Below are positions 13,901-63,639 of a stretch of 64,000 bases of DNA, one piece after another. The DNA is from Squalus acanthias (Eukaryota). The notes beneath the pieces are model-generated. The model was not told the DNA's origin. It was given only the letters and a program-made list of their open reading frames with translations, and made no database searches. A program made the position numbers and the translations under genes. The stretch covers positions 15,624,001 through 15,688,000 of the forward strand of contig CM059449.1 in assembly GCA_030390025.1 (NCBI GenBank). The letters are read 5' to 3'. Positions within the stretch are counted from its first letter, which is position 1; every line of letters starts with the position of its first letter.

Positions 13901-13904
13901 TCTC

Positions 13905-17859: not shown

Positions 17860-18201
17860 CAGTTACTGTTGGAAAAATCACCGTAATTCAGAGCCCGCAA
17901 TCACTCACCAAAACCGCGGGACAGACAGCGGGCCTGCTCTGTAGATATGAGGGTCCCAAAGGAATCGGCAGCTGCACGTGGCACCGAGGCACCAAACAGG
18001 GAAATGAAGTTTCCAACAATACAGCGGAATACAGAGGCAGGGTGTTCGGGGCAAGTGAAGAGGAATTCAGCCAGAGGGGAGACGCGTCCATTAGAATAAT
18101 CCAGCTGAAACCGGAAGATACCGGGCTCTATTTTTGCAAACTGGAGCTCTTGGGATTCGCTGCAGCAGACGGACCCGGGACAGCAGTGACCGTGGAACGG
18201 G
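17860..18201 (+). CDS. NCR3-like: Gene A exon 2, NKp30-like VJ-type Ig V domain (AVTVGKITVIQSP...LLC...IGSCTW...EYRGRV...DTGLYFC...GPGTAVTVER)
   Basis: 342-nt phase 1-1 exon (tacag| ... |gtaagt). Canonical V-set Cys, Trp, DxxxYxC and a J-like GxGT motif. Resembles recalled NKp30 motifs (IGSVTW, EV.N.T.E.RGR, YVC.VEVLG...G.GT). Confidence 0.9.
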
Positions 18202-18387: not shown

Positions 18388-18539
18388 GTGCCGAAACGGA
18401 ATTTAAGATAATGAGCAACGAAGAGCCTACAAGCTTCTTCAGCGACGTCCGGATTCTATGGTGTGTCCGTGCTGCAGTGATAGCTTTACTGGTCGTTTTT
18501 GGAATCATCGTCGCTATCTATCTGCTTCCGTCAGAAGAG
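18388..18539 (+). CDS. NCR3-like: Gene A exon 3, stalk plus TM containing Arg (ILWCVRAAVIALLVVFGIIVAIYLL)
   Basis: Acceptor tccatag| is in frame (phase 1) with the V exon; donor GAG|gtactg is phase 0. The Arg sits near the TM N-terminus as in NKp30 (LLLRAG). Confidence 0.8.
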
Positions 18540-19795: not shown

Positions 19796-20549
19796 CTTAT
19801 ATACATACTTTATTTGTTCTATGTTATTTTACTGAAAACAGCTCACTGTAAAGCAGTTTCAGTTTGAGCTTTCTCCGTACAACTTCACTGCTTTCCCAAG
19901 GTTTCTCTTGCTCTCCTCTGGGGTGAGAAGAACCTCCGCGGAAAATCCAGGCGATTCCACTTACAAGGGAAAAATTGTAGGATTGTATCGTGCGGTAACT
20001 AACTTATTGTGTGTCTGCAAACTGAGTCTACTTTGAGCTCCATAGCACATTTCCAAATAATTAATTTGGCCATTCTTAAAGAAGGTCGTAAATGCAATAC
20101 TGAGGGATATTTATATTCATCAGTTCTTGCAAAGCCCAGTTAAGCTCTACCATAATTAATTAGTCCTGAACACATGACAGCAGGACTAATACACTTTCCG
20201 AGTCTCATAAGGGTGATATTAACAATTTTGAAGTACCGCAATTTAAAAAAAAATGTAGCAGAGCTGGATTGACACCGCTTGACAGTTTCTGCCGGGTCGC
20301 CTGGGGTTTCCGCCGATCTTCTGCCGAAGTTACGGCGGGAGATACCCCAGCGAAAATTCGCCCCTAGTGTTTGTAACGTTCAGCTCAGAGTTATTTAATT
20401 AAACTGCTATGGACGCGATAGATAACACAGTCCTGTTTCCCAAATGGGAATTCTATGAAGATCCTGCAATAGTCAGTTATATAATTGAAGGACAGTGACA
20501 AATTAGCAGAAATAAATCATCCAAAGGTTTATAAACTAGTCTGAACTAC

Positions 20550-38079: not shown

Positions 38080-38114
38080 CTGTTTCATGGATCTCTGAGT
38101 AGAGCGGATCTGGA
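38080..38114 (-). CDS. NCR3-like: Gene B 35-nt micro-exon (S)PDPLYSEIHET
   Basis: tcttttgcttcag| acceptor, G|gtcaat donor, phase 2 to 1, YxxI motif. Confidence 0.7.
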
Positions 38115-38224: not shown

Positions 38225-38246
38225 CTGGTGGGTTGCTGAAGAGCGA
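38225..38246 (-). CDS. NCR3-like: Gene B 22-nt micro-exon VALQQPT
   Basis: Long pyrimidine tract ending ctcctcacag|, AG|gtgact donor, phase 1 to 2. Confidence 0.7.
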
Positions 38247-38557: not shown

Positions 38558-38689
38558 CTCTCTTCTGATGCCGGCTGATAACAACTATGATTATGATGAT
38601 GATGATGATCAGGAGAGGAACCACTATCGTTAATAAGACGCGTGGTGGGATCATTGGTGCGGGCTCGCCGTGGCAGCTCTCTCCACCAC
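38558..38689 (-). CDS. NCR3-like: Gene B stalk plus uncharged TM (VLLTIVVPLLIIIIIIIIVVI-SRHQKR)
   Basis: tttacacacag| acceptor, G|gtaaca donor, 132 nt phase 1-1; basic stop-transfer residues follow the TM. Confidence 0.85.
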
Positions 38690-40255
38690 CTGTGTGTAAA
38701 TGTAAAGTTTCATTGTGAGACAGAGCAGTCAAGAGCAGGGCAATGGTCACATTGAGATTGAGGATCAGCAAATGTGACACTGATTCCCAATCCCCTTTGA
38801 CATGCGGGGCTATTTCACACTGGCATAAATCAAACTAGGCCACCGATCAAAACGCAAAATGTCACCAGTGGACAACTGGATTTATTCCCACCCTGGAAGT
38901 AACACTGGGGGAATTTTAATGTAGGGAGGCTTAATGGCTTGGTGCCACATTCCTTTCTTTTAAATAGCGGGGCGTGGGGGTGGTGTTCGTGTGAGTTCTG
39001 TTAACATCGGAACATAGTAACAGGAGGAGGCCATTCAGCCCCTTCGGCCTGTTTCACCATTCAATGAGATCATGGCTGATCTGCGACCTAACTCCATTTA
39101 ACCGCCTTTTGCCCCATATCTCTTAATACATTTGGTTAACAAAACTCTATCAATATCCGATTAAAAATTAAAAATTGATCTAGCATCAGTTGTCGTTTGC
39201 GGAAGAGAGTTCCAAACTTTTACCACCCTTTGTGTGTTTAGAAGTGTTTCCTAATTTCAATCCTGAAAAGCCTGGCTCTAATTTCTACACCATGCCCCCT
39301 AGTCCTAAACTCCCCAATCAGAGGAAATTATTTCTCTCTATCTACCATCTCTGTACCCTTTAATATCTCGAGAGTGTCGCTCCTCCAGCCCAGTTTTCTT
39401 GAATCCACTAGACCCTGGAGATCCAATGGGTCCTGAGCGCGGACGAGAAAATCTTCCCCTCGTATTTAAGGGATGCTTAAGACAAAACGAACATCTGGAA
39501 ATTAGACGGGCCGAAACTGGGTGATCAACGTGGTTCTTCTGCGGACCCATCTTTGCATTTTGTTGGCGCGCAATGTTGTAATTTGTATTTACACACACAA
39601 CTATATCCGTTACTGCCTCTATTTACAAGATGACAGTGACATCTAACTTATCACACATGTGCTTTTCCGGTTTATTCCCAATATTGGCATGCGGTGATTT
39701 CAAGGCTCACATTTTGCTCCAATTACGGGGCTCCAGTCTTCGCCTCGCACACTGTAACTGGGTTGACTTCTTATCTATAGTCATACCTAAAATTGGATGC
39801 AGCAACTGAATGTAATTAATAAATCCCCATTTATTTATTTTAAAAGATCATTCTCGGGATACGGGCGACGCTGGCGAGGCGGGCATGTTATTGTCCATCT
39901 CTGGTTGACCCCTTGAGAAGGTGCTGGTGGGCCAGTCTTCTTCTTGAACCGCTGCAGTCCGGTGTGGTGAAGGTTCTCCCACAGTGCTGTTTTGGAGGCA
40001 GTTCCAGGATTTTGGAATGAAAAGCGATACAAGTCCAAGTCAGGCTGGTGTGTGACTTGGCGGGGGACTTGGAGGTGATGGCGTTCCCATGCGCCTGCTG
40101 CCCTTGACCTTCTAGGTGGTGGAGTTCGCGGGTTTGGGAGTTCCAATTGATCTGATGGAGAATTTACCTATACGGCCAATATTACCCCCTAGTAAAATCC
40201 CATATGATTGCGTGCAATTTCATTGGTAAGAATATCTCCACCAATCCAAACTTAC

Positions 40256-40606
40256 TGTGTTGACGCCGTTCCACGGTCACTCTCGTCCCGGGTCCCTCTG
40301 CTGCAGCGATTCCCACGAGCTGCACTTTGCAGACATAGAACCCGGTATCTTCCGGTTTCAGCTGGATTATTCTAATGGACGCGTCTCCCCTCTGTGTGAA
40401 ATCCTCTTCACTTGCCCCGAACACCCTGCCTCTGTATTCCGCTGTATTGTTGGAAACTTCATTTCCCTGTTTGGTGCCTCGGTGCCACGTGTAGCTGCCG
40501 ATTGCTGTGGGACCCTCATATCTACAGAGCAGGCCCGCTGTCTGTCCCGCGGTTTTCGTGAGTGATTGCGGGCTCTGAATTACGGTGATGTTTCCAACAG
40601 TAACTG
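40256..40606 (-). CDS. NCR3-like: Gene B exon 2, NKp30-like VJ-type Ig V domain
   Basis: Within ORF 40182-40649; cttgcag| ... A|gtaagt, 351 nt phase 1-1. AIGSYTW, EYRGRV, DTGFYVC and GPGTRVTVE motifs. Confidence 0.92.
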
Positions 40607-41297
40607 CTGCAAGTGGGTAAAACAGACCATCTATAAATATACAGGGCACTTCTTTGCTTTAAAGCACGCCGTGGAAGGGCTGGTTTTAAGCAAATATTAT
40701 TTCGGAGGATTTTTGATAAGGTATTCCTGATCTTTAACTTGAGGGAATAAAAACAGAAAACACTGGAAACGCTCAGCAGGCCAGGCAGCATCTGTGTAGA
40801 GAGAAACAGAGTCAACGTTTCAGGTCAACGACTTTTCGTCAGAACTGGAAAAAGTTGGAGATGTACCAGGTCTTCAGCAAGTGTCGGGGCAGGGAAAAGG
40901 GGGGAGGGGAGGAAAGAACAAAAGGGAAGGTCTGTGATAGAGTGGAAGGCAGGAGTGATTAAATAACACAAGGGATGATGGTACAAGTAAAAATGAGATG
41001 GTAATGGGACAAGTAAAGGAACAAAATATGGTTCTAGAAAAGGTTTAAATAGTTAACTTGAGGGATATTGGTGCTGGAGCTGGAGCGCCTTTGGTTCTTG
41101 GGCGCACTCCTCGGTCAAGTATAGAATGGATCTGGTACAAAGTACCTCTGTCCCGTTCCAGATAATAAGCATTCACTTTAATTTCAGTTCTCCCGATATG
41201 CTTTCTGTGCTGCCCGCCGGTCTCATTAACACTTTGAGCGAGAGTGTGAAATGGGCAATCTGGAATTAAACAGCTTGCCCGATGTTCTCTTCCATTT

Positions 41298-42891: not shown

Positions 42892-42934
42892 CGGAGAACA
42901 TAGCGAATGCCCAGGTAACTGCAGCCCAATTCAT
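42892..42934 (-). CDS. NCR3-like: Gene B exon 1, leader MNWAAVTWAFAMFS
   Basis: gagaATGA start, hydrophobic peptide, phase-1 donor G|gtaagc. Similar to the gene A leader (MN...W..AM). Confidence 0.75.
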
Positions 42935-43089
42935 TCTCCCTCTCGGCGGCGATATCATTTCAGAAAAGAAATTCAGGTAGTGTACAGATTGGAATATTTA
43001 AGTAATGCAGCGGGAGAGTGAACCTGAGTCAGAGTCCGGATGTGAGGGAATGGAAAAAAAATGAATTACAAGCTGTTTATACAACCGCA

Positions 43090-43165: not shown

Positions 43166-44949
43166 CAATCTCTCTCAAGGACAGTTCGCAGCAGATACTC
43201 ACACGCGGGGTAGATTCATGGCTTCACCCGTAACCTGGGTCCTTAACTGACCACGGGATAGGAGGCAGAGAGTCGTGGATGTTTCTGTCACTGGTGAGAA
43301 GTATGCAATGGGGTTCCCCAGTGATTGGTATTAGGACCATTGCTTTTCTTGTTATATAGAAATGTTCTGGACTTGTGTATAGGGAGCACAATTTAGAAAT
43401 TTGTGAATGATGCAATAATTGGTAACATAGTAAATAGTAAGAGGGACAGTAGCAGACTTCAGGAGGACATAGCCTGATGAAATGGGCAGGTACATGGCAG
43501 ATGCAATTGAATGCGGCTAAGTGTGAAGTGATGCACTTTGAGAGGAGCAACATGGAGAGGCACTGTGACCTAAATGGTGATATTTTGAGGGGGTGCAAGT
43601 GCAGAGAGACCTGGGTGTGCATATTCACAAATATCTGAAGGTGGCAGGGCAAGTTGACAAGGCAGTTAAGAAAGCGTGTGTGATACCTGTCTTTGTCAAT
43701 CGGGGCATTGAATGCAACAACAAGGAAGTGAAGCTAAGCCTTTACTAATCACTGGTTAGGCCTCAGCTTTTGTATTGTGTACAATTCCCGTTTTCTCGTT
43801 TAGAAAGAAAAGAAGGAATTGCATTTATATAGCGCCTTTCACCAGCTCAGGATGTTCCAAAGTGCTTTCCAGCCAATGAAGTACTTTTTGGAGTGTAGTC
43901 ACTGTTGTAATGTAAGAAACGCGGCAGCTAAATCTGTGGACAGCAAGCTCCCACAAACAGCAAGGTGATAATGATCAGATAATCTGTTTTATAGTGATAT
44001 TTACTGAGGGATAAATTTTGGCCCAGGACACGGGGAGAACTCCCCCTGCTCTTTTTCGAAATAGTGTCGTGGGACCTATTACATCCACCTGAGAAAGCAG
44101 ACAGTTTAACCTCTCATCCGAAAGAAGGCACATCCGACAGTGCGGCGCTCCATCAGTACTGCCACTGGAGTGTCAGCCTAGATTTTTGTGCTCAAGTCTC
44201 TGGAGTGGGACTTGAACCCACGACCTTCAGAGACTCAAGCGCTGCCCGCTGAGCCACAGCTGAATCCTAAAGGGCTCCTGTTCCTTCATTTTACTTCACA
44301 CGCACATAGTCAAGAACTCCCTTTTCAGCTTCCCTAATGTGCGTTGAGTTTTCCTTTCCCGATCCTTGCTCTCTCTGAAGAATTTGTCACATTGCGTGTA
44401 CACACACATATATATATATATATATATACATAACTCTAACTGCAACAGCAGTGCTGGGTTGACTGGGCGTGTATGAGCGTATGTCTGTGAGAGAGAGGAT
44501 GTGCAAACTGTGTGCGTGCGAATCAGAAGGATAGTAAGGGCTTTCTGCACAGAGTATCTGACAGCTTGTCAGGGTCTGCAACGACCTGCGAGCTATTGAT
44601 GTTCGTGGCCCTGGTGTCAGTCAACACGTTGACTCCGCTCTGCGGTCAGCTACGTGCCAAGAGTGAAGCTGTGTGGGCGTCGAGCTCTTCGCTGCCCAAC
44701 CCAACCTGTTAACCTGAGCGAGTATTTTGAAAACTCGCAGATGAAGTCCTATAAATATTCTAGCGAGATCGACAACTGACTGAAATGTGTTTATCGCTGA
44801 ACGCTACAGATCGTGAGGTGTGAACTGTGGGCGGGTAACTGCAGAGAATCATCTCGCAAATATTTCCACTGCTTTAGTGCGAGGCCTATTTTGCCTTAAA
44901 GCAAATCTAGAGGCCAATGATATATCAAATAGGGAATTCAGAAGAAGCT

Positions 44950-46966: not shown

Positions 46967-48194
46967 AATTCTATATTTATTAAGGTGTACGATTATTTGT
47001 TTGGGCAGGTTGTTTCCTTATGCAGAACTAATATATTACGAAGTTACAGTGTGTAAAAAAAACGATTTTATTTTATTATGCTGTGTTACTTTGCGTTGAA
47101 TCCACCTTTTCAAAGGTATATGCTTTTTATCTTTCGGGGAACTTTATATATATATTATACACATTAACGTTCTCCTCCATGCAGAAGCTGTGAATTTGCA
47201 TTTTACAATTAACATAATTAATAGGGCCTACTAAAATGTATTTATGGAAATAAATTAACTCACGGACTCCTAAACGACTGTGTTGCACATGGAATTATCT
47301 GATATATTATACCTTCTACTCGACAAATCAACGTCTTTGCGTTCGACACAATTTATTCCATTCGCAAAAAATTGATATTCAACCCGTTTCCAAAAGTTCC
47401 CATACTTACACTTGACATAATAGAAAGGACAGATTTCCTTCTTAAATGATTAAAGATGACAGAAGTGAAATCTGCCCCCAGTATGAGGTTGAAATAGAAA
47501 TGATTTGGGGAATGGTGATTATATTATGCCAATACAAAGTAAACAAACTGCGTGAAAACACAGCAGATCCGCCTTTATAAAGTGACAATTGCCTCTAATT
47601 TTTCCACTATAAAGGTTCTGAATATATACAGATGTTCAATCTGATTATGGACTGCAATTTCCCAAAGTTCCGTGAGAAACGGGAAAAGGACCCAATGTAA
47701 TGACAGCTGATATAGGTTTGTAGCTCAATGATTGATGGATCAATCAGCATTTTAAATTCTTCATAATAGCTTGTAAATTGTGGGACACAAGAGATCATTT
47801 TGTCCAAAAAAAACCTGTCCCTGTTTGACAGATCAATGCTTCTTTCTCCAGAAACAAACATGTTGTCTCTTGAATCTATTTGTACTGCCCACTCCCACGG
47901 CCGTCTCCAGTAACTTGTTCCACAAATCCCTTACTCTATAGGCGTACAGTTTACGCCTGACTTCCCTTCTTATAGCTAACTAGTTAACGTCTAAAGTGTG
48001 ACCCTTGGAAATGAGATCCTTCCCCACAGTGACCGATCTATCTGGGCTCAATTCATAATAATTGTACAACGTTAATTGACAGGTTGCGGTATTTCATGTA
48101 CGATACATTGATTCGAATTTATTCCAACAAAAAAGGACACCCTGTAACATCAATTAGTGACAGTGAAATATACTTTAATTTGAGCTTCACACCT

Positions 48195-49017
48195 CGTGGC
48201 AGATGACATTTCACGCAAGAAAGTGCGAAGTGTTACATTTTGGTAGGAAGAACGAGGAGAGGCATGATAAACTGAAGGTTACGATCCAAAAGGGGCTGCA
48301 TGAACAGAGAGACCTGGGGGTACATGTGCACAAATCATTGAAGGTGGCAGGCCAGGTTGAGAAAGCGGTTAACAAAGCATATAGGAGACTCGGCTTCATA
48401 AATAGAGGCATAGAGTACAAAAGCAAGGAAGTTATGATGAACCTTTATAAAACACTGGTTCGGCCTCAACTGGAGTATTGTGTCCAATTCTGGGCACCAC
48501 ACTTTAGGAAGGATGTGAAGGCCTTAGAGAGGGTGCAGAAAAGATTTACAAGAATTGTTCCATGGATGAGGAGCTTCAGTTATGTGAATAGACTGGAGAA
48601 GTCGGGGCTGTTCTCTTTGGAGCAGATAAAGTTTAGAGGAGATCTGATAGAGGTGTTCAAAATCATGAGGTGTCTGGACAGAGTAGATAGAGAGAAACTG
48701 TCCCCATCGGTGGAAGGGTCGAGAACCAGAGGACATAGGTTTAAGGTGATTGGCAAAAGAACCAAAGGCGACATGAGGAAAACTTTTTTACGCAGCGAGT
48801 TGTTAGGACCTGGAATGCACAGCCTGAAAGGATGGTGGAGGCAGATACAATCGTGGCTTTCAAAAGGGATTTGGATGAGTACCTGAAGGGAAAAAAATGC
48901 AGGGCTACGGCGAAAGGGCGGGTGAGTGGGATTAGCTGAAGTGGCCTTGCAGAGAGCCGGCACGGGTTCGGCGGGCTAAATGGCCTCCTTCTGTGCTGTA
49001 ACCATTCTATGATTCTC
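48195..49017 (+). mobile_element. CR1 LINE 3' fragment
   Basis: ORF 48203-48886 ([21 protein letters not shown]); ctatgatt tail. Confidence 0.9.
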
Positions 49018-49078: not shown

Positions 49079-49417
49079 ACAATGGGTTGATGAGTGGAAT
49101 CAGAGTGTTCCAATCCCCAGATGCCATCAATGTAATAGAAGGAGGATCGGTACAGCTGAACTGCACTTTTGAGGCGAATAGTACTGTCGGACGAGTTGTT
49201 TGGAGGCGGGCCTCACAAAACATGGAAGTGTCGGTTCGGAATCCTTTCTATCAGAGCCGGGTAACGAAGCCAGTGTCGAAATTATTTGCAGAAAAAATGG
49301 CTTTCATTGAAATGATCAATTTACTGACAATGAACGCGGATTTATATAACTGCGAGGTGGAAATTCCGGCGCTTGGGAAAGCAGGCGGGACAGGAACACA
49401 ACTTATAATAACTGACA
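49079..49417 (+). CDS. NCR3-like: Gene C V exon, divergent NKp30-like VJ-type Ig domain
   Basis: tactctag| ... A|gtaagt, 339 nt phase 1-1. VFQSP...EGGSVQLNCTF...VGRVVW...YQSRV...DLYNCEVEI..LG...GTGTQL. Leader exon not securely located. Confidence 0.85.
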
Positions 49418-50970: not shown

Positions 50971-51088
50971 GAGCTAGAGTCGAGCCTATCTGCCATTTCC
51001 CCACGCTCAGCGCTGGATTACAAGTTACAAAAACGGAGCTGCTGATCATTCTCATAATCACAGGCCTGACGACGTACCTCTGTCCCAC
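50971..51088 (+). CDS. NCR3-like: Gene C stalk plus TM containing Lys (GLQVTKTELLIILIITGLTTYLCP)
   Basis: tttctaacag| acceptor in phase 1; AC|gtaggg donor in phase 2, matching the next micro-exon. Confidence 0.7.
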
Positions 51089-51312: not shown

Positions 51313-54147
51313 TATGAATTAGCTGCGCAAATAGAGGTAAACGAATATGATTTGATTGGGATTACTGAAACATGGCTCCAGGGTTGCCAAGGCTGGGATC
51401 CAGCGGTACTCAGTATTCAGGAAAGATAGGCAAAAACGAAAAGGAGGTGGGGTAGCATTGCTGGTTAAAAAGGGCATTAACACAATTGAAAGGAAGGATA
51501 TTAGCTCTGATGATGTGGAATCTGTATGGGTTGAACTGAGAAATAACAAGGGGCAGAAAACGTTAGTGGGAGTGGTATATGGACCTCCAAACAGTAATGC
51601 GGAGGCTGGGGATGGCATTAAAAGGGAAATTAGAGAAGCGTGCAATAAGGGCACTGCAGTCATCATGGGTGACTTTAATCTACATAGAGATTGGGCTAAC
51701 CAAATTAGTAACAATACTATGGAGGAGGAATTCCTGGAGTGTTTACGGGATGGTTTCCTGGACCAATATGTCGAGGAACCAACTAGACATCAGGCCATCT
51801 TAGACTGGGTATTATGCAATGAGAAAGGGTTAATTAGCAATCTTGTTGTGCGAGGCCCCTTGGGTCGGAGCGATCATAATATGATAGAATTCTTCATTAG
51901 GATGGAGAGTGAAGCAGTGAATCAGAGACTAGGGTCCTGAATTTAAATAAAGGAAACTACGATGGTATGAGGTGTGAGTTGGGTAGGATTGATTGGGGAA
52001 TGTCACTCAAAGGGTTGACGGTGGATAGTCAATGGCAAACATTCAAAGACCGCATGGAGAAACTACAGAATTTGTTCATCCCAGTTTGGCATAAGAATAA
52101 AACAAAAAGGGTGACTCAACCGTGGCTAACAAGGGAAATTAGGGATATATAAGAATCAAGGAGAGGGCATATAAATTGGCCAGAAAAAGCAGTAACCCTG
52201 AGGATTGGGAGCAGTTTAAGATTCAACAAAGGAGGACAAAGGGATTTATTAAGAAGGGAAAAATAGAATACGAGAGTAAGCTTGCTGGGAACATAAAAAC
52301 TGACTGTAAAAGCTTTTATAGATATGTGAAGAGAAAAAGATTAGTGAAATCAAGCATAGGTCCCTTGCAGTCAGAATCAGGGGCACTTATAATGGGGAAC
52401 AAAGACATGTCAGCCCAATTAAATAGATATTTTGGTTCTGTCTTCACAAAGCAGGACACAAATAACCTCCCAGAGATGTTGGGGAACATAGGGTCTGATG
52501 AAAGGGAGGAACTGAAATAAATCAGTATTTGTAGGGAAATGGTGTTCGGGAAATTGAAGGGATTGAAGGCCGATAAATCCCCAGGGCCTGATAATCTACA
52601 TCCCAGGGTACTTAAGGAAGTGGCCCTAGAAATAGTAGATGCATTGCTGATCATCTTCCAACATTCGATGGAATCTCAAACAGTACCCATGGATTGGAGG
52701 GTAGCTAATGTTACCCCACTATTCAAAAAGGGTGGTAGAGAGAAAACGGGGAATTACAGACCCGTAAGCCTGACATCGGTAGTGGGGAAAATGCTAGAGT
52801 CCATTATAAAAGATGTAATAGCTGATCACTTGAAAAACAGTGACAGGATCGGACAAAGTCAACATGGATTTACAAAAGGTAAATCATGCTTGACTAATCT
52901 ACTGGAATTTTTTGAGGATGTAACTTGTAAAATAGATAAGGGAGAACCAGTGGATGTGGTGTATTTCGACTTCCAAAAGGCTTTTGATAAGGTCCCGCAT
53001 AAGAGATTAGCGTGTAAAGTTAAGGCACATGGGATTGGGGGCAAGGTATTTACTTGGATAGAGAACTGGTTGGCAGACAGAAAGCAAAGAGTTGCAATAA
53101 ACGGGTTTTTTTCCGAGTGGCAGGCAGTGACTAGTGGGGTACCGCAGAGATCGGTCCTTGGACCCCAGCTATTCACAATATATATTAATGATCTAGACAA
53201 GGGAACTAGATGTAATATCTCCTAGTTTCCAGACGACACAAAACTGGGTGGGCGTGTGTGCTGTGAGGAGGATGCCGATAAACTCCAGGATGATTTGGAC
53301 AGGTTGGGTGATTGGGCAGAAGCGTGGCAGATGCAATATAACGTGGAAAAATGTGAGGTTATGCACTTTGGTGTCAAAAACAGAAAGGCAGATTATTATC
53401 TGAATGGCAATAGATTGGGAGAAGGGAAAGTGCAACGAGACCTGGATGTCCTTGTGCACCAGTCGCTGAAGGTAAGCATGCAGGTGCAGCAGGTGGTTAA
53501 GAAGGCAAATGGTATGTTGCCCTTCGTAGCGAGAGGGTTTGAGTACAGGAACAAGGATGTCTTGCTGCAGTTGTACAGGGCCTTGGTGAGACCACACCTT
53601 GAGTACTGTGTGCAGTTTTGGTCGCCTTATCTGAGGAAGGATGTTCTTGCCATGGAAGAAGTTCAGCGAAGATTCACAAGGCTGATACCTGGGATGGCAG
53701 GAATGACGTATGAAGAGAGATTGGGTCGATTGGGCTTATACTCGCTGGAGTTTAGAAGAATGAGAGGGGATCTCATTGAAACTTATAAATTTCTGACAGG
53801 ACAGGACAAACTAGAAGCAGGAAGAATGTTCCCGATGGTCGGGGAGTCCAGAACCAGGGGTCACAGTCTAAGGATAAGGGGTCAGCCATTTAAGACAGAA
53901 ATCAGGAGGAATTTCTTCACCCAGAGAGTGGTGAACCTGTGGTATTCTCTGCCACAGAAGGCAGTAGAGGCCAATTCATTAAGTAGATTCAAGAAGTAGT
54001 TGGATATATTTCTTAAGGCTAAAGGGATCAAGGGATATGGGGAGAAAGCAGGGACAGGGTACTGAATTTGGATGATCAGCCGTGATCGCATTGAATGGCG
54101 GAGCAGGCTACTCCTGCTCCTATCTTCTATGATTCTATGATTCTATG
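51313..54147 (+). mobile_element. Near-complete CR1 ORF2 (APE endonuclease + RT) with stops and frameshifts, intronic in gene C
   Basis: ORFs 51356-51940 (GDFN, SDH), 52539-53225 (SCLTNL, DFQKAFDKV) and 53256-53999; (ctatgatt)n tail. Confidence 0.95.
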
Positions 54148-54700: not shown

Positions 54701-55390
54701 ATTGCTGATACTAGCTTTTTATTCCAGATTTATTCAATTATTTCAATTTAAATTCCCCAGCTGCCATGGTGGGATTTGAACCCATGTCCTCGGATCATTA
54801 GCCCAGGCCTCTGGATTACTAGTCTAGTAACATAACAGGGTCGATGCTGCGGGATGTTTCCCCTGGCTGCTGAGCCTAGAACAATGGTCACAGTCTCAGA
54901 ATAAAGGGTCAGCCATTCAGGACTGAGATGAGTAGAAATGTCTTCACTCAGAGAGTTGTGAATCTTTGGAATTCTTTACCCCAGAGGGCTATGGAGGCTC
55001 AGTCTTTGAGCATATTCAAGGCTGAGATCGTTAGATATTTGGACTCTAAGGGAATCAAGGGTTATGGGGCTGGGGCAGGAAGGTGGAGTTGAGGTGGAAG
55101 ATCAGCCATAATCATATTCAATGACGGAGCAGGCTTGAAGGGCCGAATGGCCTACTCCAGCTCCTATTTCTTATGTTCTTATAACCACGATGCTACCGTC
55201 CGCCCTTAGTAAATTTTAACACTTTCGCCATCACCTTTTATTCCCACGGCCCTCGAACCTGCACGCTTACAACGGTCAGTGATATATTGAAGTGCAGATC
55301 ACTCTTCTCTTTATCTCTCTATTTAATTGATGTGCATTTAGATATTCAATCCACTGACATCTTTTTCCCTTTTCCGTTTTGATCTCAAAG

Positions 55391-55425
55391 CAATATTGCG
55401 CCTTGCAGTAACATTATTTTTAATG
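55391..55425 (+). CDS. NCR3-like: Gene C micro-exon, 35 nt, NIAPCSNIIFN
   Basis: Pyrimidine tract ending caaag|, G|gtgagt donor, phase 2 to 1. Confidence 0.6.
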
Positions 55426-55647
55426 GTGAGTATTAGTTATATGCATTTAACTGTTCGATTTTCTAAATAGTCCTTGAAGCAATTTTTTTTAATGAGCAAT
55501 TATTGTTAGTAAAGGACTTCAGTAGTTTCGCTGATTTTTATTGCTGGATGGACATAAGAGGTGCATACAATTTTAAACTCGTTTCACAGTCTCAAATGTC
55601 TTGTTTGCATCAAAGGAAACCTTAATTTTCGGCTTTTGTTCCCACAG

Positions 55648-55669
55648 AGTTAGCTCCACAAGCATTAAG
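55648..55669 (+). CDS. NCR3-like: Gene C micro-exon, 22 nt, ELAPQAL(R)
   Basis: ttttgttcccacag|, AG|gttggt, phase 1 to 2. Confidence 0.65.
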
Positions 55670-55756
55670 GTTGGTTGGTGGTTATGAGGGTGACGCATTT
55701 TTTTAATTACCTGGATTTTTGTTTCAGCTATGTGATTGTATCTTTTCTCTTGCTAG

Positions 55757-55806
55757 ATCCTGGATGGACATCGCTGGTTCCGCCTATGATGAAATTAATC
55801 CAGCTG
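55757..55806 (+). CDS. NCR3-like: Gene C micro-exon, 50 nt, SWMDIAGSAYDEINPA (ITIM-like SAYDEI)
   Basis: ttttctcttgctag|, G|gtgagt, phase 2 to 1. Confidence 0.7.
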
Positions 55807-56549
55807 GTGAGTGACGCACCTGCAGCGCAGTTAACCTGCTCCTCAATGGACCGGTTGCTTCAGAGCCTACATGCACTGCCCGGTGTACTCCTGAGGCACC
55901 AGTGCCAGAGAGATCCCATGGTTGGAGCCATGAGATGTGCCGAACTAACTGATCCTACTCTGGCTGGTGATTGGGTGCTACCGTCGCCGGGATTTTAATC
56001 GGGAGCCTGGTTGGGTGCAGGGCAGAAAGACTGGCTGGGAGCTGTGAGGTGGGAGGTATCAGGTGCGGGCCGGAGGTGAGGTTGGGTTGTCGGGGGCCGG
56101 AGGAGGATTGGGGAGGAGGGAGGGAAGCATCGGGGCCGGAGCGTCGAGGAGGTGAGGGAGAGAAGATCGGGGCAGGAGCATTGGGTGGGGGGTGGTGTGG
56201 ACAGGGAAAGATTATCGGAGCCGGAGCATCAGGGGAGAAGGGAGAGAACATCGGGGCTGCAGCCTGGGGGCAAGGGGGGATCGGGAGAAAACATCTGGGG
56301 GTGGGGGTGGGGGGGAGAGGTGGGATCTGCTTGCACCATCTTTTCAGGTCGTGCTTTCCCTATCATAACAACTCACTGCATAAAAAATTCTCCTGAACTC
56401 CCCTCTGGTACTTTTGCCAATTATCTTGAATCGGTATCCTCTGGTTACCGACCCTCCCACCAGTGGAAACGGTTTCTTGTAGTCGAACTGTTTTTAAAAA
56501 GATTGCATTAACGTTACAAAGCTTTCATGGTGAACTTTTACTTTTGTAG

Positions 56550-56571
56550 ATGTTCCTCCACCAATGGGAAG
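56550..56571 (+). CDS. NCR3-like: Gene C micro-exon, 22 nt, DVPPPMG(R)
   Basis: cttttgtag|, AG|gtcggt, phase 1 to 2. Confidence 0.65.
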
Positions 56572-56673
56572 GTCGGTAAATCTCAGAGTTAACGTTTCCT
56601 ACATCTTTTATGCTAATTGCTCTGTAACTCTGCAGTAACACTCATTTTCTCTTATTTGTTTGTCGTCCCGAAG

Positions 56674-56708
56674 GAATGAGCCGTTCTGTGATGAAACTAA
56701 CTTGGATG
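56674..56708 (+). CDS. NCR3-like: Gene C micro-exon, 35 nt, NEPFCDETNLD
   Basis: gtcccgaag|, G|gtgagc, phase 2 to 1. Confidence 0.65.
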
Positions 56709-58285
56709 GTGAGCACCACCGATTAAAGAATCATTTAACAAGATTCAATAAGGCTTCAGTATTATACTTGTGTAAATAGCTCAGGATCAAACTCAGTAGC
56801 TTGGTGTTTGCTATTTTTTAAAATATTCGTTCTTTGGATGTGGGCATCACTGGCAAGGCCAGCATTTATTGCCCATCCCTAATTGCCCTTGAGAAGGTGG
56901 TGCTGAGCCGCCTTCTTGAACCGCTGCAGTCCGTGTGCTGAAGGTACTCCCACAGTGCTGTTAGGGAGGGAATTCCAGGATTTTGAGACAGCGACGATGA
57001 AGGAACAGTGATATACTTCGAAGTTAGGATGGTGTGTAACTTGGAGGGTAACTTGGAGGTGATGGTGCTCCCATACGCCTGCTGCCCTTGTCCTTCTATG
57101 TGTTACAGTTCGCGGGTTTGGGAGGTACTGCCGAAGAAGCCTTGGCGAGTTGCTGCAGTGCATCTTGTAGATGGTACACACTGCAGCCACGGTACACTGG
57201 TGGTGGAGGGAGTGAATGTTTAAGGTGGTGGATGCGATGCCAATCAAGTGGGTTGCTTTTTCCTGGATGGTGTCGAGCTTCTTGAGTATTGTTGGAGCTG
57301 CACTCATCCAGCCAAGTGGAGAGTATTCCATCACACACCTGACTTGTGCCTGGTAGATGGTGGAAAGGCTTTGGGGAGTCAGGAGGTGCGACACTCGCCT
57401 CAGAATACAGTACCCCTGCCCTGCTCTTGTAGCCACATTATTTATGTGACTGGTCCTGTTAAGTTTCTGGTCAATGGTGACACCCCCAGGATGTTGATGG
57501 TGGGGGATTCAGCTATGGTAATGCCGTTCAATGTCAAGGGGCGGTGGTTAGAGTCTCGCTTGTTGGAGATGTAATATTCTTCAGCTTGTGCTGTTGGACA
57601 CGGGGCAATTTTAACCGAACCCGACCATCGGGAAACTGACGAGAGCGGGTGCAACGCCGGCATTACACGCCGCTCGATTTTACTCTCCAGTGAAGTCAGT
57701 GGAGGGTAATATGGGGCAGGGGGTGTAAAACCGGAGTTCCACCCGATCCCGTGGGTTTTCCTGGCCGGCCTTAGGTTAAAATTACCCACGGTATTAGCAG
57801 TGAGACTGCTGGAGCGCTATTGAGTTACAGCACCGGTTAGGAGGAGCGTAGAGTCCCCCCTGCACCGTACTGATGCTATACTTTAGCCACAATCTCTGAA
57901 GAATACCTTTTATTGCTTCAGTATGACATCGCTTTTGATTTGTTGGGGCAGCTACACATCATCCGTTTAATGCTTCATTATATTCAGTTCAACAACGCCC
58001 GCTGGATGCTGGATGTCCTAAACTATCTTTACACATTGCCCCTCTAGACAGGGATAAAGGGCACCCTCACCCGGCAGTTAGAGTTGGAATGAAACTGGTC
58101 GCATAATGAAATGGGAGCCGACTGCATTGAAACCTTCCCACTCCCACTCCCCTTTGATAAACAATTATTAATTATTATTGAAAAATGATAAAAACCAAGA
58201 CGCAGTTCAGAATGCAGCTGTGCTAAACACAGTCTCAGATATAACAGAGTTACGAATTTCTTGTTTGTTCATTGTCTTTCCACAG

Positions 58286-58307
58286 ACTTCTCTCCACCTT
58301 TGCAATG
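58286..58307 (+). CDS. NCR3-like: Gene C micro-exon, 22 nt, DFSPPLQ(C)
   Basis: gtctttccacag|, TG|gtgcgt, phase 1 to 2. Confidence 0.65.
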
Positions 58308-58384
58308 GTGCGTAGATATCACTGTGACATTTTGCTGCCTTTATTTTCATGGCACGTACCGCGTGTCCTCCCTTTGTGGTTCAG

Positions 58385-58418
58385 TGATGAAGAGGTCTAT
58401 GCCAAAATCCACCGCATG
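58385..58418 (+). CDS. NCR3-like: Gene C micro-exon, 34 nt, DEEVYAKIHRM (3' boundary uncertain)
   Basis: ctttgtggttcag| acceptor in phase 2, YxxI motif. The only donor-like site is non-canonical (TG|gcaagg); otherwise the frame reads on to TAG at 58502. Confidence 0.55.
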
Positions 58419-58496
58419 GCAAGGATTGTTACAGTGTCTTACTTACAAGCTACTATTGTCTATATTAGCCTTTTATTTATGCGACATTCATTACTC

Positions 58497-61034
58497 CGAT
58501 AGAGATAGAGGAACAGATATGTAGGCAAATCTCAGAGAAGTGTAGAAATAATAGGGTAATAATAGTAGGGAATTTCAACTTCCCCAATATTAACTGGGAT
58601 AGTCTGAGTGTGAAAGGCTTAGAGGGTGTGGAATTCTTAAGTGCATCCAGAAGAGCTTTTTGAGCCAGCATGTAGAAAGTCCTACAAGAGAGGGGCGGTA
58701 CTGGACCTAATTCTAGGGAATGTAGCCGGGCAAGTGATAGAAGTGTCAGTAGGAGAGCATTTTGGTGACAGTGACCATAATTCGGTGAGATTTAAGGTAG
58801 TCATGGAAAAGGGCAAAGATGGACCGGAAATTAAATTTATAAATTCGGGGAAGGCCGATTTTAATATGATAAGGCTGGATCTGGCCAAAAGTGGACTGGC
58901 ATCAGCTACTTGTAGGAAAATCCACATCAGAGCAGTGGGATTCTTTCAGAAAGGAAATAGAGAGTACAACGCCAACATGTTCCCGTGAAGGTCAATGTTG
59001 GGACCAACAAGCCCAGGGAACCCTGGATGTCAAGGGAAATACAAGAATGGATTCGGAAAAAGAGAGGCTTTTGGCAGATACAAAGGACTAAAAACAGTGG
59101 AAGCCCTAGAGGAGTATAGAAAGTGCAGGGGGGTACTTGAAAAAGAAATTAGGAGAGCGAAGAGGGAGCATGAAAAAACACTGGCGGGCAAAATAAAGGA
59201 AGGACCCAAGTTGTTTTATAAGTATATTAAGGACAAGAGGATAACCAGGGAAAGAGTAGGGCCCATTAGGGACCAAAGTGGCAATCTGTGTGTAGAGCCG
59301 GAAGATGTAGGTGAGGTTTTAAATGAATATTTTTCATCTGTGTAAACTATGGAGAAGGACGATGTAGGCATAGAAATCAGGCAGGGGGATTGTGATATAC
59401 TTGAACAAATTAGTATTGAGTGGGAGGAGGTACTAGCGGTTTTAGCGGGCTTATAAATGGAAAAATCCCCAGACCCAGACGAGATGTATCCCATGCTGCT
59501 TTGTGTGACAAGGGAGGAGATTGCAGGGGCTCTGACACAAATTTTCAGAACCTCTCTGGCCACAGGGGAGGTGCCAGAGGAATGGAGGACAGCCAACGTA
59601 GTACCATTATTCAAGAAGGCTAGTAGGGATAAACCAGGAAATTACAGGCCAGTGAGCCTAACATCAGTGGTAGAGAAATTATTGGAAAAAAATCTGAGGG
59701 ACAGAATTAGTCTCCACTTGGAGAGGCAAGGATTAATCAAGGATAGTCACCATGGCTTTGTCATGGGGAGATCATGTCTAACCAATTTGATTGCGTTTTT
59801 CGAGGGGGTAACTAGCTGTGTGGATGAGGGTAGTGCAGTTGATGTAGTCTACATGGACTTCAGTAAGGCTTTTGACGAAGTCCCGTATGGGAGACTGGTC
59901 AAGAAGGTACGAGCCCATGGGGTCCAGGGCAATTTGGCACATTGGATCCAAAATTGGCTCAGTGGCAGGCGGCAGAGTCTGGTGGTCGAAGGTGTTTTTT
60001 GTGACTGGAAGTCTGTGTCCAGTGGTTTACTGCAGGGATCGGTGCTGGATCCTTTGCTGTTTGTAGTGTACATTAATGATTTAGATATGAATGTAGGAGG
60101 TATGATCAGTAAGTTCGCAGATGACACGAAAATTGGTGGAGTGGTAAATAGCGAGGAGGTAAGCCTCAGGGTACACGATGATATAGACGGATTGGTCAGA
60201 TGGGCAGAACAGTGGCAAATGGAATTTAACCCTGAAAAGTGTGAGGTGATGCATTTTGGGAGTACTAACAAGGCAAGGGAATACACAATGAATGGTAGGA
60301 CGCTAGGAAGATCAGAGGATCAGAGTGAACTTGGTGTGCATGTACATATATCCCTGACGGCAGCAGGACACGTAGATAAGGTGGTTAAAAAGGCATATGG
60401 GATACTTGCCTTCATTAGCCCAGGCATAGAATATAAGAGCAGGGAGGTTATGATGGAGCTGTACAAAACGCTTGTTAGGCCACAGCTGGAATACTGTGTG
60501 CAGTTCTGGTCGCCACACTATAGGAAGGATGTGATTGCATTGGAGAGGGTGCAGAGGAGTTTCACCAGGATGTTACCTGGGTTGGAGCGCTTCAGCTATG
60601 AAGAGAGACTGGACAGGCTGGGGTTGTTTTCCTTAGAGCAGAGAAGGCTGAGGGGGGACGTGATTGAGGTGTACAAAATTATGATGGGCATAGATAGGGT
60701 CGATAGAAAGGAACTTTTCCCTTAGTAGAGGGGTCAATAACCAGGGGGCATTGTTTCAAGGTAAGGGGCAGGAGGTGTAGAGGGGATTTGAGGAAAAAGT
60801 TTTTCACCCAGACGGTGGTTGGAATCTGGAACTCACTGCCTTAGAGGGTGGTAGAGGCAGGAACTCTCACAACATTCAAGAAGCCTTTAGATGAGCACTT
60901 GAAACGCCATAGCATACAAGGCTACGGACCAAGTGCTGGAAAATGGGATTAGAATAGACAGGGCTTGATGGCTGGCGCGGACACGATGGGCCGAAGGGCC
61001 TCTTTCTGTGCTGTAAAACTCTATGACTCTATGT
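58497..61034 (+). mobile_element. CR1 LINE, 5'-truncated ORF2 with a 422-codon uninterrupted RT stretch
   Basis: ORF 59457-60725 (NYRPVSL, DFSKAFD, QGSVL, KFADD); upstream frameshifts and stops; ctctatga tail. Confidence 0.95.
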
Positions 61035-61870: not shown

Positions 61871-63639
61871 GTCTCCTTCCGTATGAAAAAATAAGGTACT
61901 TTTCCTGTTCGCTATATTAACGGTCGGATTTGCTGTGTAACCAGACCACATGCTTTTGGCTATAAACTTTATGCACAGTGAATGTTTTCATACTGCCATT
62001 AAATTTTGTGCGATTATTTTGCTCTTCGTCCCGAGCCATACTTTCGATTTCCTGCAAAGTTGCTTCCTGGAACCGTCCTTTAAACATGTAACAACAGTCA
62101 AATGTTCAGATCCGAATGTTCTCTTTGTTGTCAGATATTATAGAGATGGTTCGCTCCGTAGATTTTAACTGGGTGCTTTGTAAACTTACAGTTACTGAAA
62201 TTCAGACATAGAATGTATTTATTGTTTCTGTAGAAAACCCCCATGTCAGGTAAAAACGAAAAACTCCTCAGAGCGAAAAATGCCACTTTTGAACTCACTA
62301 TAAAAGCTTATATATTTTTGAAAAAAGGGAAATCCATTAGGCAAACCGAGCCACTGTCCCCTATTGTGAGACAAATCCAACCTAACAACAACTACTTGCA
62401 TTGATATAGCGCCTTTTATACAGTAAAACGTCCCACAGTCTTCACAGGAGCGATTATCCATCAAAATTTGACACCGAGTCATATATTAAGACAGAGGTAG
62501 GCTTTAATGAGTGTCTTAAAGGAGAATAGCGAGGTGCAGAGGCTTAGGAAGGGAATTACAGAACTGAGGACCCAGCCAGCTGAAAGCCTTCTCATCCAAT
62601 CGCTTAATCCACTATCTCTCTGGAAGCGCATTTAACAGTGGTCTTGCAGTACGGCAGCCTCAGCTAAGCAAAACAGTTCGCGGTACCCTTGGATGTGACA
62701 GCAGCAGTGGAGCTTGGGGACCAAGCTGTCAGTCAGAATACAATTATACTGAGGCAACCAGGTGTGAGACCACCTCTAGCAAAGGGACGAGCATGACCAA
62801 TCCGCTTCATAATCTCGCAAACATGAGCGCCATTCTCTTGAAATCTCCTCTCCTCCTAAGAAAAACATAGCCAAACTCTATAACTTTCCTTGATAACATA
62901 TTATTCAGTTTGTTCCTGAACTGTTTCCCTTTTCCTTAAGACGCTTCTTATTTGCATACCGCTCCATGAGTGATGGCCGTCCTCCAGTAACTCGGCCAAG
63001 TGGCCATTGTACATATATGAACATCGACCGTGAATTTAACAAGCCGATCCTGTAATCAGCAAAGTCCCACACGCATGCCATTTCTATTACATGGTCGATG
63101 AAGATCCAATGAGTACACGAAATCTAGCTAATGCTCCATCCCTAACCCAGTGGCGTTGAACCACCTCTCCCCAACACTTGCCGAACTCTACTACTCTCCT
63201 TTTGCCTTGCACCATCTCTTAATGTCTCTTAATCTTCCTGCCTTCCATCTAGAGCCATCTTTTGTTTCTTAACTTGTCCCATCACCATCTCTTTTGCCTT
63301 GCACCATCTCTTAATCTCTCTTAATCTCTTTTGTCTTCCATCCTATTACAGACCTTCCCTTTTGTTCTTTCCTCCCCTCCCCCCTTTCCCTGCCCCTGCA
63401 CTTATTTAAAAACCTGTTCTATCTTCAGCTTTTTCCAGTTCTGACGATGGGTCATCGACCTGCAACGTTAACTCTGTTTCTCTCTCCACAGATGCTGCCT
63501 GACGTGCTGAGTATTTCCAGCAGTTTTCTGTTTTTATTTCAACTAAAGTGTTGCTTGCTTGTTCTGTGCAGCTCCTCTACTCAATGGACTCACGCCTTTG
63601 AGGCATGGGGGAGCGTTTATCCTTAAAAAAGGAAATCAC

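Follow-up and report, generated by a model that had tools for sequence, protein, structure and literature searches.

In this work, we describe seven micro-exons in a stretch of 64,000 nt of Squalus acanthias DNA (hereafter, the window) that are probably genuine tail exons of an NKp30/NCR3-family gene, gene C, organized as repeated two-exon modules with a putative function in phospho-tyrosine signalling. Three results make this ladder of exons convincing: (i) the enrichment of 22-nt exons, (ii) the in-register likeness between the ladder exons, and (iii) the presence of the same modules in the same order in the horn shark Heterodontus francisci.

The original prediction proposed a stop-free series of exons of 35, 22, 50, 22, 35, 22 and 34 nt joined in phase, and the exon sequences together with splice-site scoring confirmed it at the same coordinates, all on the + strand. 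Exon 1 (55391..55425, 35 nt, NIAPCSNIIFN) belongs to the motif class, has Cys (TGC) at the motif position and ends in the donor ATG|GTGAGT (score 10.3); exon 2 (55648..55669, 22 nt) is a proline spacer, LAPQAL (acceptor 10.5, donor 5.8); exon 3 (55757..55806, 50 nt), a motif exon with 15 extra 5' bases, has Tyr (TAT) within SAYDEI (acceptor 9.8, donor 10.8); exon 4 (56550..56571, 22 nt) is the spacer VPPPMG (acceptor 9.2, donor 6.1); exon 5 (56674..56708, 35 nt, NEPFCDETNLD) is a motif exon whose motif position holds Cys (TGT), followed by Thr at +3 (acceptor 5.9, donor 9.1); exon 6 (58286..58307, 22 nt) is the spacer FSPPLQ (acceptor 8.8, donor 7.5); and exon 7 (58385..58418, 34 nt) is a motif exon in which Tyr (TAT) follows three acidic residues in DEEVYAKI (acceptor 6.5). 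One correction concerns the donor of exon 7, which is GC (ATG|GCAAGG, 2.7) and not GT, and is the weakest site of the ladder. The other 13 of the 14 splice sites are canonical, most of them strong, and six of the seven acceptors and six of the seven donors rank in the top 0.2-7.5% of the AG or GT sites of the window, a heuristic ranking based on weight matrices. Translation of the exons also confirmed the predicted series of codons at the motif position (TGC, TAT, TGT, TAT).

The repeated cassette consists of a 22-nt proline-rich spacer exon and a 35-nt (once 50-nt) exon for a [Y/C]-x-x-[I/T] motif. As read from the bases at either end of each exon, the phase alternates along the ladder, with 2 bases left over and then 1. 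The phases of the two cassette exons are complementary, so that every unit contributes only complete codons; the pair lengths are indeed multiples of three, as had been proposed (22+35 = 57 and 22+50 = 72). From the transmembrane (TM) exon onwards, the introns measure 4302, 222, 87, 743, 102, 1577 and 77 nt, and those within the 22-to-35/50 pairs are the short ones expected (87, 102 and 77 nt).

An in-phase chain is by itself not beyond chance. A dynamic-programming search with lenient thresholds yielded stop-free chains of 111 micro-exons on the + strand and of 54 and 37 micro-exons on the - strand, so that such chains can be built anywhere in the window, as would be expected if the ladder were a chance assembly of AG..GT pseudo-exons chosen by eye. 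We nevertheless find this hardly credible in view of the enrichment of 22-nt exons, the similarity between exons, the recurrence of the cassette in gene B and the colinear protein of the horn shark described below. In both strands of the 64 kb (128 kb), only six open 22-nt AG..GT exons passed the thresholds (acceptor >=5, donor >=5), three of them being ladder exons and one the gene B cassette exon, and 22 was the commonest among lengths 15 to 60 (8 versus about 2.7 on average). Ungapped in-register identity between ladder exons amounts to 11-13/22 and 16-19/35 bases, which 0-17 of 2000 shuffles attained for the pairs concerned; exon 2 shares 12/22 and 11/22 DNA bases with the other 22-nt exons, and exon 5 shares 19/35 with exon 3 (2/2000 shuffles). 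No clear likeness of this kind is seen between the intra-cassette introns. Besides, depth was 0 over exons 2-5 and 7 in all four runs of other organisms compared, with intronic repeats covered thousands-fold, and the ladder exons are therefore not part of high-copy repeats. These four runs cover only repeats, plus traces at 55200-55667 (X11) and 58242-58358 (X9); the 16 runs available, these four included, contain no more than 0.30 of the words sampled.

In gene B, on the - strand, the two-exon cassette stands once: a 22-nt spacer exon (38225..38246; acceptor 10.6, donor 8.7) lies directly behind the TM exon, and 110 nt behind it follows a 35-nt motif exon, PDPLYSEIHET (38080..38114; acceptor 9.7, donor 4.7), which shares 16-17/35 bases in register with ladder exons 3 and 7 (8 and 2 of 2000 shuffles, respectively). 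The proposal that the ladder would have arisen by tandem duplication of a two-exon unit is supported by the phase pattern and in-register similarity that the units share, and by this single cassette of gene B.

The comparison with the horn shark provides evidence from outside the window. Nine RefSeq products of one H. francisci NCR3-like gene (isoforms X1-X8, XP_067865360.1 to XP_067865368.1, plus XP_067865369.1, all of them computed gene models) carry the ladder modules in the same order behind a TM segment, and this location of the homologous modules in the full-length isoforms supports the assignment of the ladder to a cytoplasmic tail. Exon by exon, 41 of the 67 whole-codon ladder residues are identical, and the nine products score 206, with no other protein exceeding 141 (proteins of up to 700 residues scanned, out of 162). 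For six of the seven exon peptides the best local match is colinear in the horn-shark protein, and for five of them it was reached by no more than 4 of 500 shuffles: exon 1 (9/11 identical, residues 202-212) and exon 3 (11/16, residues 224-238) by none, exon 4 (4/6, residues 240-244) by four, and exons 6 (4/6, residues 259-264) and 7 (5/11, residues 266-273) by three each. The colinear match of exon 2 is 3/6 only and not significant alone (122/500 shuffles), and the best local match of exon 5 lies off its colinear place (132/500).

The genes of both species alternate spacer and motif modules, have two spacer-plus-motif pairs of equal length (19 residues), share the Cys of the first common module and possess a TM exon that opens with V-E-P. 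In contrast to gene C, the horn-shark protein has extra upstream modules, including one more with Tyr, and further C-terminal exons; it has Tyr (in T-I-Y-H-D-I, an ITSM-consensus sequence) where gene C has Cys, and His where gene C has Tyr. The Tyr/Cys alternation was consequently not borne out as a conserved design, as the horn-shark series is C, Y, Y, H and, of the two Cys of gene C, the first alone is common to both species. In module 3, none of the three key motif positions (-2, 0 and +3) agrees with the horn-shark counterpart, a divergence that looks like decay, and the phase of exon 7 differs from that implied by the horn-shark isoforms. The ladder was found in one other species only: the horn-shark tail search gave two clusters among 17 candidates, both corresponding to that same gene.

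The original prediction did not name a receptor family, which the PDB matches and the names of the nearest relatives now indicate to be NKp30/NCR3-like. Scanned for ORFs over its full length, the window yielded only three V exons, each with a V-set domain, in genes A, B and C, and gene C is, judging by its sequence, a single-V NKp30/NCR3-family receptor clustered with two paralogues. Its V-set exon (49079..49417, + strand), of the VJ type, begins with 2 bases of a split codon and passes on 1 base, matches the Pfam V-set family (E 6.5e-06) and closes with G-T-G-T-Q-L-I-I, so that the J-like G-x-G-T-x-L strand is encoded together with the V domain; genes A and B show the same arrangement. Its top four PDB sequence matches are NKp30 chains (E 4e-08 to 1e-07), followed by a TCR alpha chain (6.5e-03). 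The stalk and TM exon (50971..51088, + strand; acceptor 10.4, top 0.4%; donor CAC|GTAGGG, 5.3) leaves 2 bases (AC), which the first base of the exon at 55391 completes to a codon, and the phases agree at both joints, from V to TM and from TM to ladder exon 1. The hydrophobic stretch of this exon is short and without Arg or Lys, and the exon matched no Pfam family. Within these 64 kb no gene of the MHC was recognised, and the protein searches returned no protein of the window itself.

The association of this V exon with this tail deserves consideration. The ladder, and perhaps the TM exon, might come from another transcript than the V exon at 49079, for instance from that of a neighbour whose V exon is gone. 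The V domain of gene C is closest to one horn-shark gene and its tail to another: the V exon is 64% identical to XP_067865593.1 ('natural cytotoxicity triggering receptor 3-like'), a protein with a TM and tail that bear no relation to the ladder, while the horn-shark ladder gene has a V domain that shares only 36.5% identity with that of gene C versus 45% with those of genes A and B. Moreover, the TM exon is separated from ladder exon 1 by a 4302-nt intron that contains retroelement ORF2 fragments for endonuclease and reverse transcriptase (51356..53222, + strand; Pfam Exo_endo_phos_2, 6.8e-11, and RVT_1, 1.8e-23). However, the scans of the whole window found no further + strand V exon upstream, and the fitting phases at the two joints and the V-E-P opening shared with the horn-shark ladder gene argue for one transcript; as reassortment of V domains and tails among family members would look the same, we regard a chimeric model as very unlikely.

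It is also conceivable that the ladder is real by descent but that gene C is decaying or dead here and no longer encodes a full receptor, a reading that we consider doubtful although far from negligible. Several features would fit it, in addition to the divergence of module 3. An in-phase leader exon resembling those of the homologues was not found for gene C (a look-alike at 47500-47538 leaves no base, and there is one unrelated candidate at 44599-44644), and the TM exon, if its donor is unused, runs at once into a TAG. Exon 7 would have lost its GT donor. If its GC donor is unused, 27 further codons follow before a stop (58419..58502, + strand), and no canonical AATAAA was seen by eye in the sequence at this read-through. 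If it is used, the next look-alike exon, a weak and possible relic (62135..62172, + strand; acceptor 9.5, top 0.7%; donor 1.6) that matches the horn-shark stretch after the last module (E 0.18 over 5.6 kb searched), requires 1 base of the preceding exon and exon 7 leaves none, which leads to a stop after two codons. A possible dead proline-spacer exon (55210..55274, + strand) lies 116 nt upstream of ladder exon 1; it retains an intact donor (ACG|GTCAGT, 6.5, top 3.5%) that leaves 2 bases and has no acceptor, as there is no AG inside and an in-frame TAA stands at the sole upstream AG, and its end, EPARLQ, weakly matches (E 0.98) the horn-shark EPVGLQ that directly precedes the module homologous to ladder exon 1. 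Finally, retroelements have inserted in or behind three introns: besides the ORF2 fragments mentioned above, a high-copy repeat (56838..57656), with very high summed contig depth in 4/4 runs of other organisms, occupies the 1577-nt intron between exons 5 and 6, and a reverse transcriptase ORF (59457..60722, + strand; Pfam RVT_1, 3e-27) lies downstream of exon 7. Against decay, the reading frame is open in the V and TM exons as well as in each of the seven ladder exons, and the splice sites of the ladder are, with the exception noted, canonical and mostly strong; GC donors of the G|GCAAG type are used in vertebrates, retroelements in introns are ordinary, and the missing leader proves little because leader exons are short and diverge fast.

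If the ladder is, as we favour, part of an active gene C, its tail would contain two candidate tyrosine motifs. Exon 3 S-A-Y-D-E-I fits the ITIM consensus (I/V/L/S)-x-Y-x-x-(I/V/L), in which S is a variant at the first position. Exon 7 D-E-E-V-Y-A-K-I presents three acidic residues, one residue and YxxI, and partly resembles the pattern of hemITAM receptors, which ends in L where exon 7 has I at +3. The ITIM consensus, without the S variant, and the hemITAM pattern, [E/D][E/D][E/D]xYxxL, are both quoted in PMC11507803. A second ITIM or a downstream ITSM (T-x-Y-x-x-V/I) is absent from the gene C tail, where module 3 reads P-F-C-D-E-T. The two tyrosine motifs, 34 residues apart as counted from exon peptides and split codons, are too distant for an ITAM, in which two YxxL/I motifs are separated by 6-12 residues.

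The original prediction further suggested that whole cassettes (57 or 72 nt) could be skipped by alternative splicing, varying the number of phospho-motifs. Frame neutrality of each pair speaks for it, and so does PECAM-1, whose tail of several short exons is alternatively spliced with functional consequences (PMC2132561). Even so, cassette skipping was not supported and seems quite unlikely: none of the nine isoforms lacks a cassette, a count that refers to the horn shark and not to S. acanthias, and residues 173-276 are invariant in all nine, which differ by loss of the TM exon, two single-residue indels and their 3' ends.

Altogether, these observations suggest that, after duplication of the unit, modules gained and lost tyrosine independently, with two modules of gene C keeping it (the ITIM S-x-Y-x-x-I and the acidic YxxI) and two having Cys. 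Judging from motif consensus, Src-family kinases may phosphorylate the tail tyrosines and SH2-domain proteins would then be recruited: the ITIM would attract phosphatases of the SHP type, and the acidic YxxI might bind Syk or Src kinases. Gene C might act as an inhibitory or mixed-signal partner of its paralogue gene A, which has Arg in the TM; a TM without a basic residue would fit an inhibitory or mixed paralogue and not the mammalian activating form.

Mammalian NKp30 (NCR3), the best solved-structure match (E 4e-08), resembles gene C in its single V-set domain with a J-like end. It has Arg in the TM, signals via CD3-zeta or FcR-gamma and takes its short tail from one alternatively spliced last exon, whereas gene C has a TM without a basic residue and a long tail of seven micro-exons with tyrosine motifs of its own. 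Among sharks, Kinlein et al. 2021 (Immunogenetics 73:333) are said to have described an NCR3 family of several divergent subtypes. Genes A, B and C are VJ-type receptors like those of that family, and the V domains of A and B matched the nurse-shark protein P0082. The cloned nurse-shark NCR3 QTT61898.1 has a tail motif, PLY-x-[DE]-[IM]-H, similar to the gene B cassette, in a tail of one module and no ladder. NCR3 is referred to as an MHC-linked, non-rearranging VJ gene in PMC12227049. Outside this family, the tail of PECAM-1 (CD31) is encoded by a row of short exons (9-16) with single tyrosine motifs, one of them of 19 residues, an architecture comparable to the seven exons of 22-50 nt of gene C; however, PECAM-1, with its six Ig domains, is a member of another family, its exons are not described in that source as tandem two-exon copies, and tail-exon skipping is shown there for PECAM-1 and not for gene C. 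The micro-exon ladder is hence a neat route to build a tail, though not unprecedented.

The long tyrosine-motif tail of gene C next to the Arg-in-TM gene A would constitute a paired activating/inhibitory arrangement within the NCR3 family. Of the NK-cell receptors, NKp30/NCR3 is regarded as the only one to have been conserved between sharks and humans, and mammals keep only its adaptor-dependent activating form. The tail would also be a clean example of how signalling tails grow, by duplication of a phase-complementary unit followed by gain and loss of Tyr module by module. Seven exons of 22-50 nt are easily missed by gene finders and aligners, and as the proteins of the window were not returned by searches, the coordinates given here can seed the annotation of the family in other elasmobranch genomes. 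It is tempting to speculate, although we deem it unlikely, that the 22+35-nt unit is a mobile, family-wide block of shark NCR3 genes, copied in tandem or between genes, in which single transitions (TAT to TGT, TAT to CAT) toggle Tyr. Were this the case, receptors with similar V domains would thereby gain different mixes of ITIM, ITSM and hemITAM-like motifs, frame-neutral skipping of units might add a regulated layer, and the tail would represent an evolvable phospho-motif counter within the oldest conserved family of NK receptors.

The DNA studied here is repeat-rich vertebrate sequence holding three single-V receptor genes (A, B and C), and a protein search returned sharks, rays and one lungfish only as its nearest relatives. 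Gene A lies on the forward strand (V exon at about 17862-18200; transmembrane, TM, exon at 18388-18539), gene B on the reverse strand (V exon at about 40263-40610; TM exon at about 38571-38700) and gene C on the forward strand (V exon at 49079-49417; TM exon at 50971-51088). The leader exon of gene B (42893-42937, reverse strand) agrees in 12 of 15 residues with the leader of an NCR3-like protein of the horn shark Heterodontus francisci (E 0.002). All three V exons matched the Pfam V-set; the best solved-structure relatives of the gene C V domain by sequence were four NKp30 chains (E 4e-08 to 1e-07, against 6.5e-03 for the next structure family, TCR alpha), and its closest named proteins are annotated "natural cytotoxicity triggering receptor 3-like" in H. 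francisci (64% identity), Pristis pectinata and others. Based on these three lines of comparison, the genes are assigned to an NKp30/NCR3-family cluster. NCR3 is described in PMC12227049 as an MHC-linked VJ gene that does not rearrange. Positions 1-14030 of the window are taken up by a tandem array of seven copies, 63-98% alike, with a unit length of about 1.97 kb; the copies are spaced 1967-1976 apart except for two longer steps of 2181-2928. They consist of ORF fragments resembling retroelements, and the array is satellite-like, derived from a LINE piece; a repeat search showed it, while Tandem Repeats Finder, limited to periods of 500, gave no rows for 1-14500.

Gene C encodes a type-I single-V receptor without a basic TM residue, and its tail combines proline spacers with [Y/C]xx[I/T] modules. 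No TM segment showed up in a hydropathy scan (threshold 2.2), and the TM exon was recognised by reading the sequence. The original prediction was that this tail is encoded by a ladder of seven micro-exons, and these were recovered with exactly the expected places and sizes: 35, 22, 50, 22, 35, 22 and 34 nt at 55391-55425, 55648-55669, 55757-55806, 56550-56571, 56674-56708, 58286-58307 and 58385-58418 on the forward strand. Their boundary leftovers alternate between two bases and one base without a stop, and the leftover AC of the TM exon joins the C of exon 1 in one codon; with the TM donor unused, reading runs immediately into TAG. Counted from the TM exon, the introns measure 4302, 222, 87, 743, 102, 1577 and 77 nt, so that the intron within every spacer-to-motif pair is short (87, 102 and 77 nt), and the motif codons are TGC, TAT, TGT and TAT, both as predicted. 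The donor of exon 7 is of the GC type (ATG|GCAAGG), which corrects the earlier description.

An in-phase, stop-free run of seven exons is by itself a weak argument. A dynamic program building stop-free, in-phase micro-exon chains under lenient splice-site thresholds found 111 micro-exons on the forward strand and 54 and 37 on the reverse strand. Since such chains form everywhere in the window, chaining was dropped as a test of chance and replaced by a count of fixed-length exons, in-register identity and a cross-species comparison. Ranked heuristically with weight matrices, six of the seven acceptors and six of the seven donors fall in the top 0.2-7.5% of AG/GT sites in the window. Open 22-nt AG..GT exons with acceptor and donor scores of at least 5 occur six times on both strands together, three of them in the ladder and one in gene B, and 22 nt is the most frequent length between 15 and 60 nt. 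A further 22-nt candidate at 19901-19922 (forward strand), 3' of the gene A TM exon, has fair splice sites, is pyrimidine-rich and does not code for proline; it is probably due to chance. The three 22-nt ladder exons share 11-13 of 22 positions in register (reached by 0, 4 and 17 of 2000 shuffles) and the motif exons 16-19 of 35 (reached by 2-17 of 2000), and the short introns have no clear mutual likeness. Alike exons with introns not clearly alike are what old duplicates under coding constraint are expected to show.

Every comparison was run exon by exon, or set natural stored proteins against the window. A search with the gene C V domain among 1.84 billion representatives returned a horn-shark protein with the ladder repeated in its C-terminal half. 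Its gene has nine listed products, XP_067865360.1 to XP_067865368.1 (isoforms X1-X8) and XP_067865369.1, all computed gene models from a single species, and the full-length isoforms run from a V domain through a TM segment to a tail with spacer and motif modules ordered as in the window. When each window exon was translated alone, in whole codons only, and aligned locally to a horn-shark ladder protein, the best matches were colinear at residues 202-212, 215-217, 224-238, 240-244, 259-264 and 266-273; exon 5 had its best local match away from its colinear place. In total, 41 of 67 residues were identical, and for five of the seven exons no more than 4 of 500 shuffles scored as high. Among the proteins of at most 700 residues in a set of 162, only the nine horn-shark products bear the ladder (summed score 206, against at most 141 elsewhere). 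The horn-shark tail, used as the query of a word-based search, gave two clusters among 17 candidates, both from the same gene; as such a search relies on shared 5-residue words and length limits, a missing match there does not mean absence elsewhere.

Taken together with the in-register likeness of the exons, the presence of the unit as a single cassette in gene B (directly 3' of the TM exon, reverse strand; 22 nt, a 110-nt intron and 35 nt, with strong sites) backs the proposal that a two-exon unit was duplicated in tandem. The noted alternation of tyrosine and cysteine did not prove to be a conserved design, as the horn-shark residues at the four motif positions are C, Y, Y and H, and only the first cysteine is common to both species. 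Module 3 reads P-F-C-D-E-T in the window and T-I-Y-H-D-I in the horn shark, unlike at -2, 0 and +3, and looks like a decayed ITSM-type site; at module 4 the window has tyrosine and the horn shark histidine, and the horn-shark tail carries one additional tyrosine module further upstream. Gain and loss of tyrosine module by module fit this better than alternation. As for the suggested skipping of exon pairs, the arithmetic works (57 and 72 nt are divisible by three) but the products lend it no support: residues 173-276 are identical in all nine, which vary in whether the 43-residue TM exon is present, in two single-residue indels and in three different 3' ends.

Insertions have enlarged the long introns: ORFs for endonuclease and reverse transcriptase lie at 51356-53222 and 59457-60722, and a high-copy repeat at about 56838-57656 was covered thousands-fold in all four runs aligned, from other organisms. 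A G-rich low-complexity stretch of GGGAGG and GGGGCCGGAG-like units (55980-56340, forward strand) makes up much of the 743-nt intron between exons 3 and 4, and a high-copy element recognised by sequencing depth follows 3' of it at 56370-56486. The four runs came from 16 sequencing runs compared with the window, none recorded as RNA, which contained 0.10-0.30 of the sampled words. Aligned to 55200-58700 at 90% likeness, they fell mainly on the repeats within the introns and on the retroelement downstream, with no joint at any of the ladder exons, and are uninformative for or against expression of gene C; the exceptions in depth were 9.46 in the bin 58242-58358 in one run and 0.5-3.3 in 55200-55667 in another.

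The V domain of gene C and its tail point to different relatives. For the V domain the nearest protein is horn-shark XP_067865593.1, whose tail is unrelated to the ladder, while for the TM start and tail it is the horn-shark ladder gene, whose V domain is only 36.5% identical. Such a split would also result if our model of gene C fused pieces of two genes. Nevertheless, there is no further forward-strand V exon upstream and the phases agree at both joints, and for these reasons we favour a reassortment of V and tail exons among NCR3 family members over fusion.

The two ends of the gene leave room for decay of gene C, which we regard as unlikely. Short-peptide tblastn with the leaders of two homologues found no leader both in phase and like theirs: the look-alike at 47500-47538 was rejected because its sole GT leaves phase 0, a misfit to the V exon, and a scan for phase-1 exons with ATG, hydrophobic stretch and donor gave a single unrelated candidate (44599-44644). 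The extra upstream modules and C-terminal exons of the horn shark have only weak look-alikes in the window, at 55222-55272 and 62134-62169. The former belongs to a spacer-like stretch 116 nt 5' of exon 1 (forward strand), whose last residues are E-P-A-R-L-Q and whose donor is good and in the fitting phase; as it lacks an AG acceptor and begins at TAA, it is possibly a dead copy of the spacer found in the horn shark ahead of the homologous module. At the 3' end, one horn-shark isoform stops one residue beyond the last module, which suggests that the last-module exon there leaves one base. Exon 7, ending at a GC donor, has no base left over, and the look-alike of the next horn-shark exon (62135-62172, forward strand), behind the retroelement, requires one; joined to it, exon 7 reads two codons before a stop, and unspliced it reads on for 27 codons. 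Either way, the tail would end soon past the last tyrosine module and retain it. In most horn-shark isoforms, the final 21 residues match an antisense retroelement translation at 48441-48503 (reverse strand, E 0.035), and the terminal exon of that gene therefore seems, from this match, to be transposon-derived.

As regards precedent, no description of a ladder of 22- and 35-nt cassettes in NCR3 was found in the literature searched; two papers outside that search, Kinlein et al. 2021 and Flajnik et al. 2012, reportedly describe shark NCR3 genes and may already contain the exon organisation in figures or supplements. The horn-shark RefSeq models already hold the ladder implicitly. Tails built from rows of short exons, each with a tyrosine motif and alternatively spliced, have their classical case in PECAM-1 (PMC2132561). 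The ladder is carried by a newly found member of a known receptor family, and its gene structure is instructive rather than unprecedented.

In the tail of gene C, S-A-Y-D-E-I fits the ITIM pattern and D-E-E-V-Y-A-K-I is near the hemITAM pattern as quoted in PMC11507803, ending in I, not L; the tyrosines of the two motifs, at a spacing of 34 residues, do not form an ITAM. Most other relatives found have ITIM-like tails (e.g. V-Q-Y-A-T-L and V-L-Y-A-T-V). Judging from motif consensus, the likely mechanism is that Src-family kinases would phosphorylate these tyrosines, which would then recruit SH2 proteins: SHP-type phosphatases would bind the ITIM, and Syk or Src kinases might bind the acidic YxxI. 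The arginine within the hydrophobic TM span of gene A (V-R-A-A-V) is a mark of an adaptor-dependent activating receptor, and its position beside the tyrosine-motif-tailed genes B and C looks like a pairing of activating versus inhibitory receptors. With the predicted recruitment of phosphatases and kinases, gene C would partner gene A in an inhibitory or mixed role.
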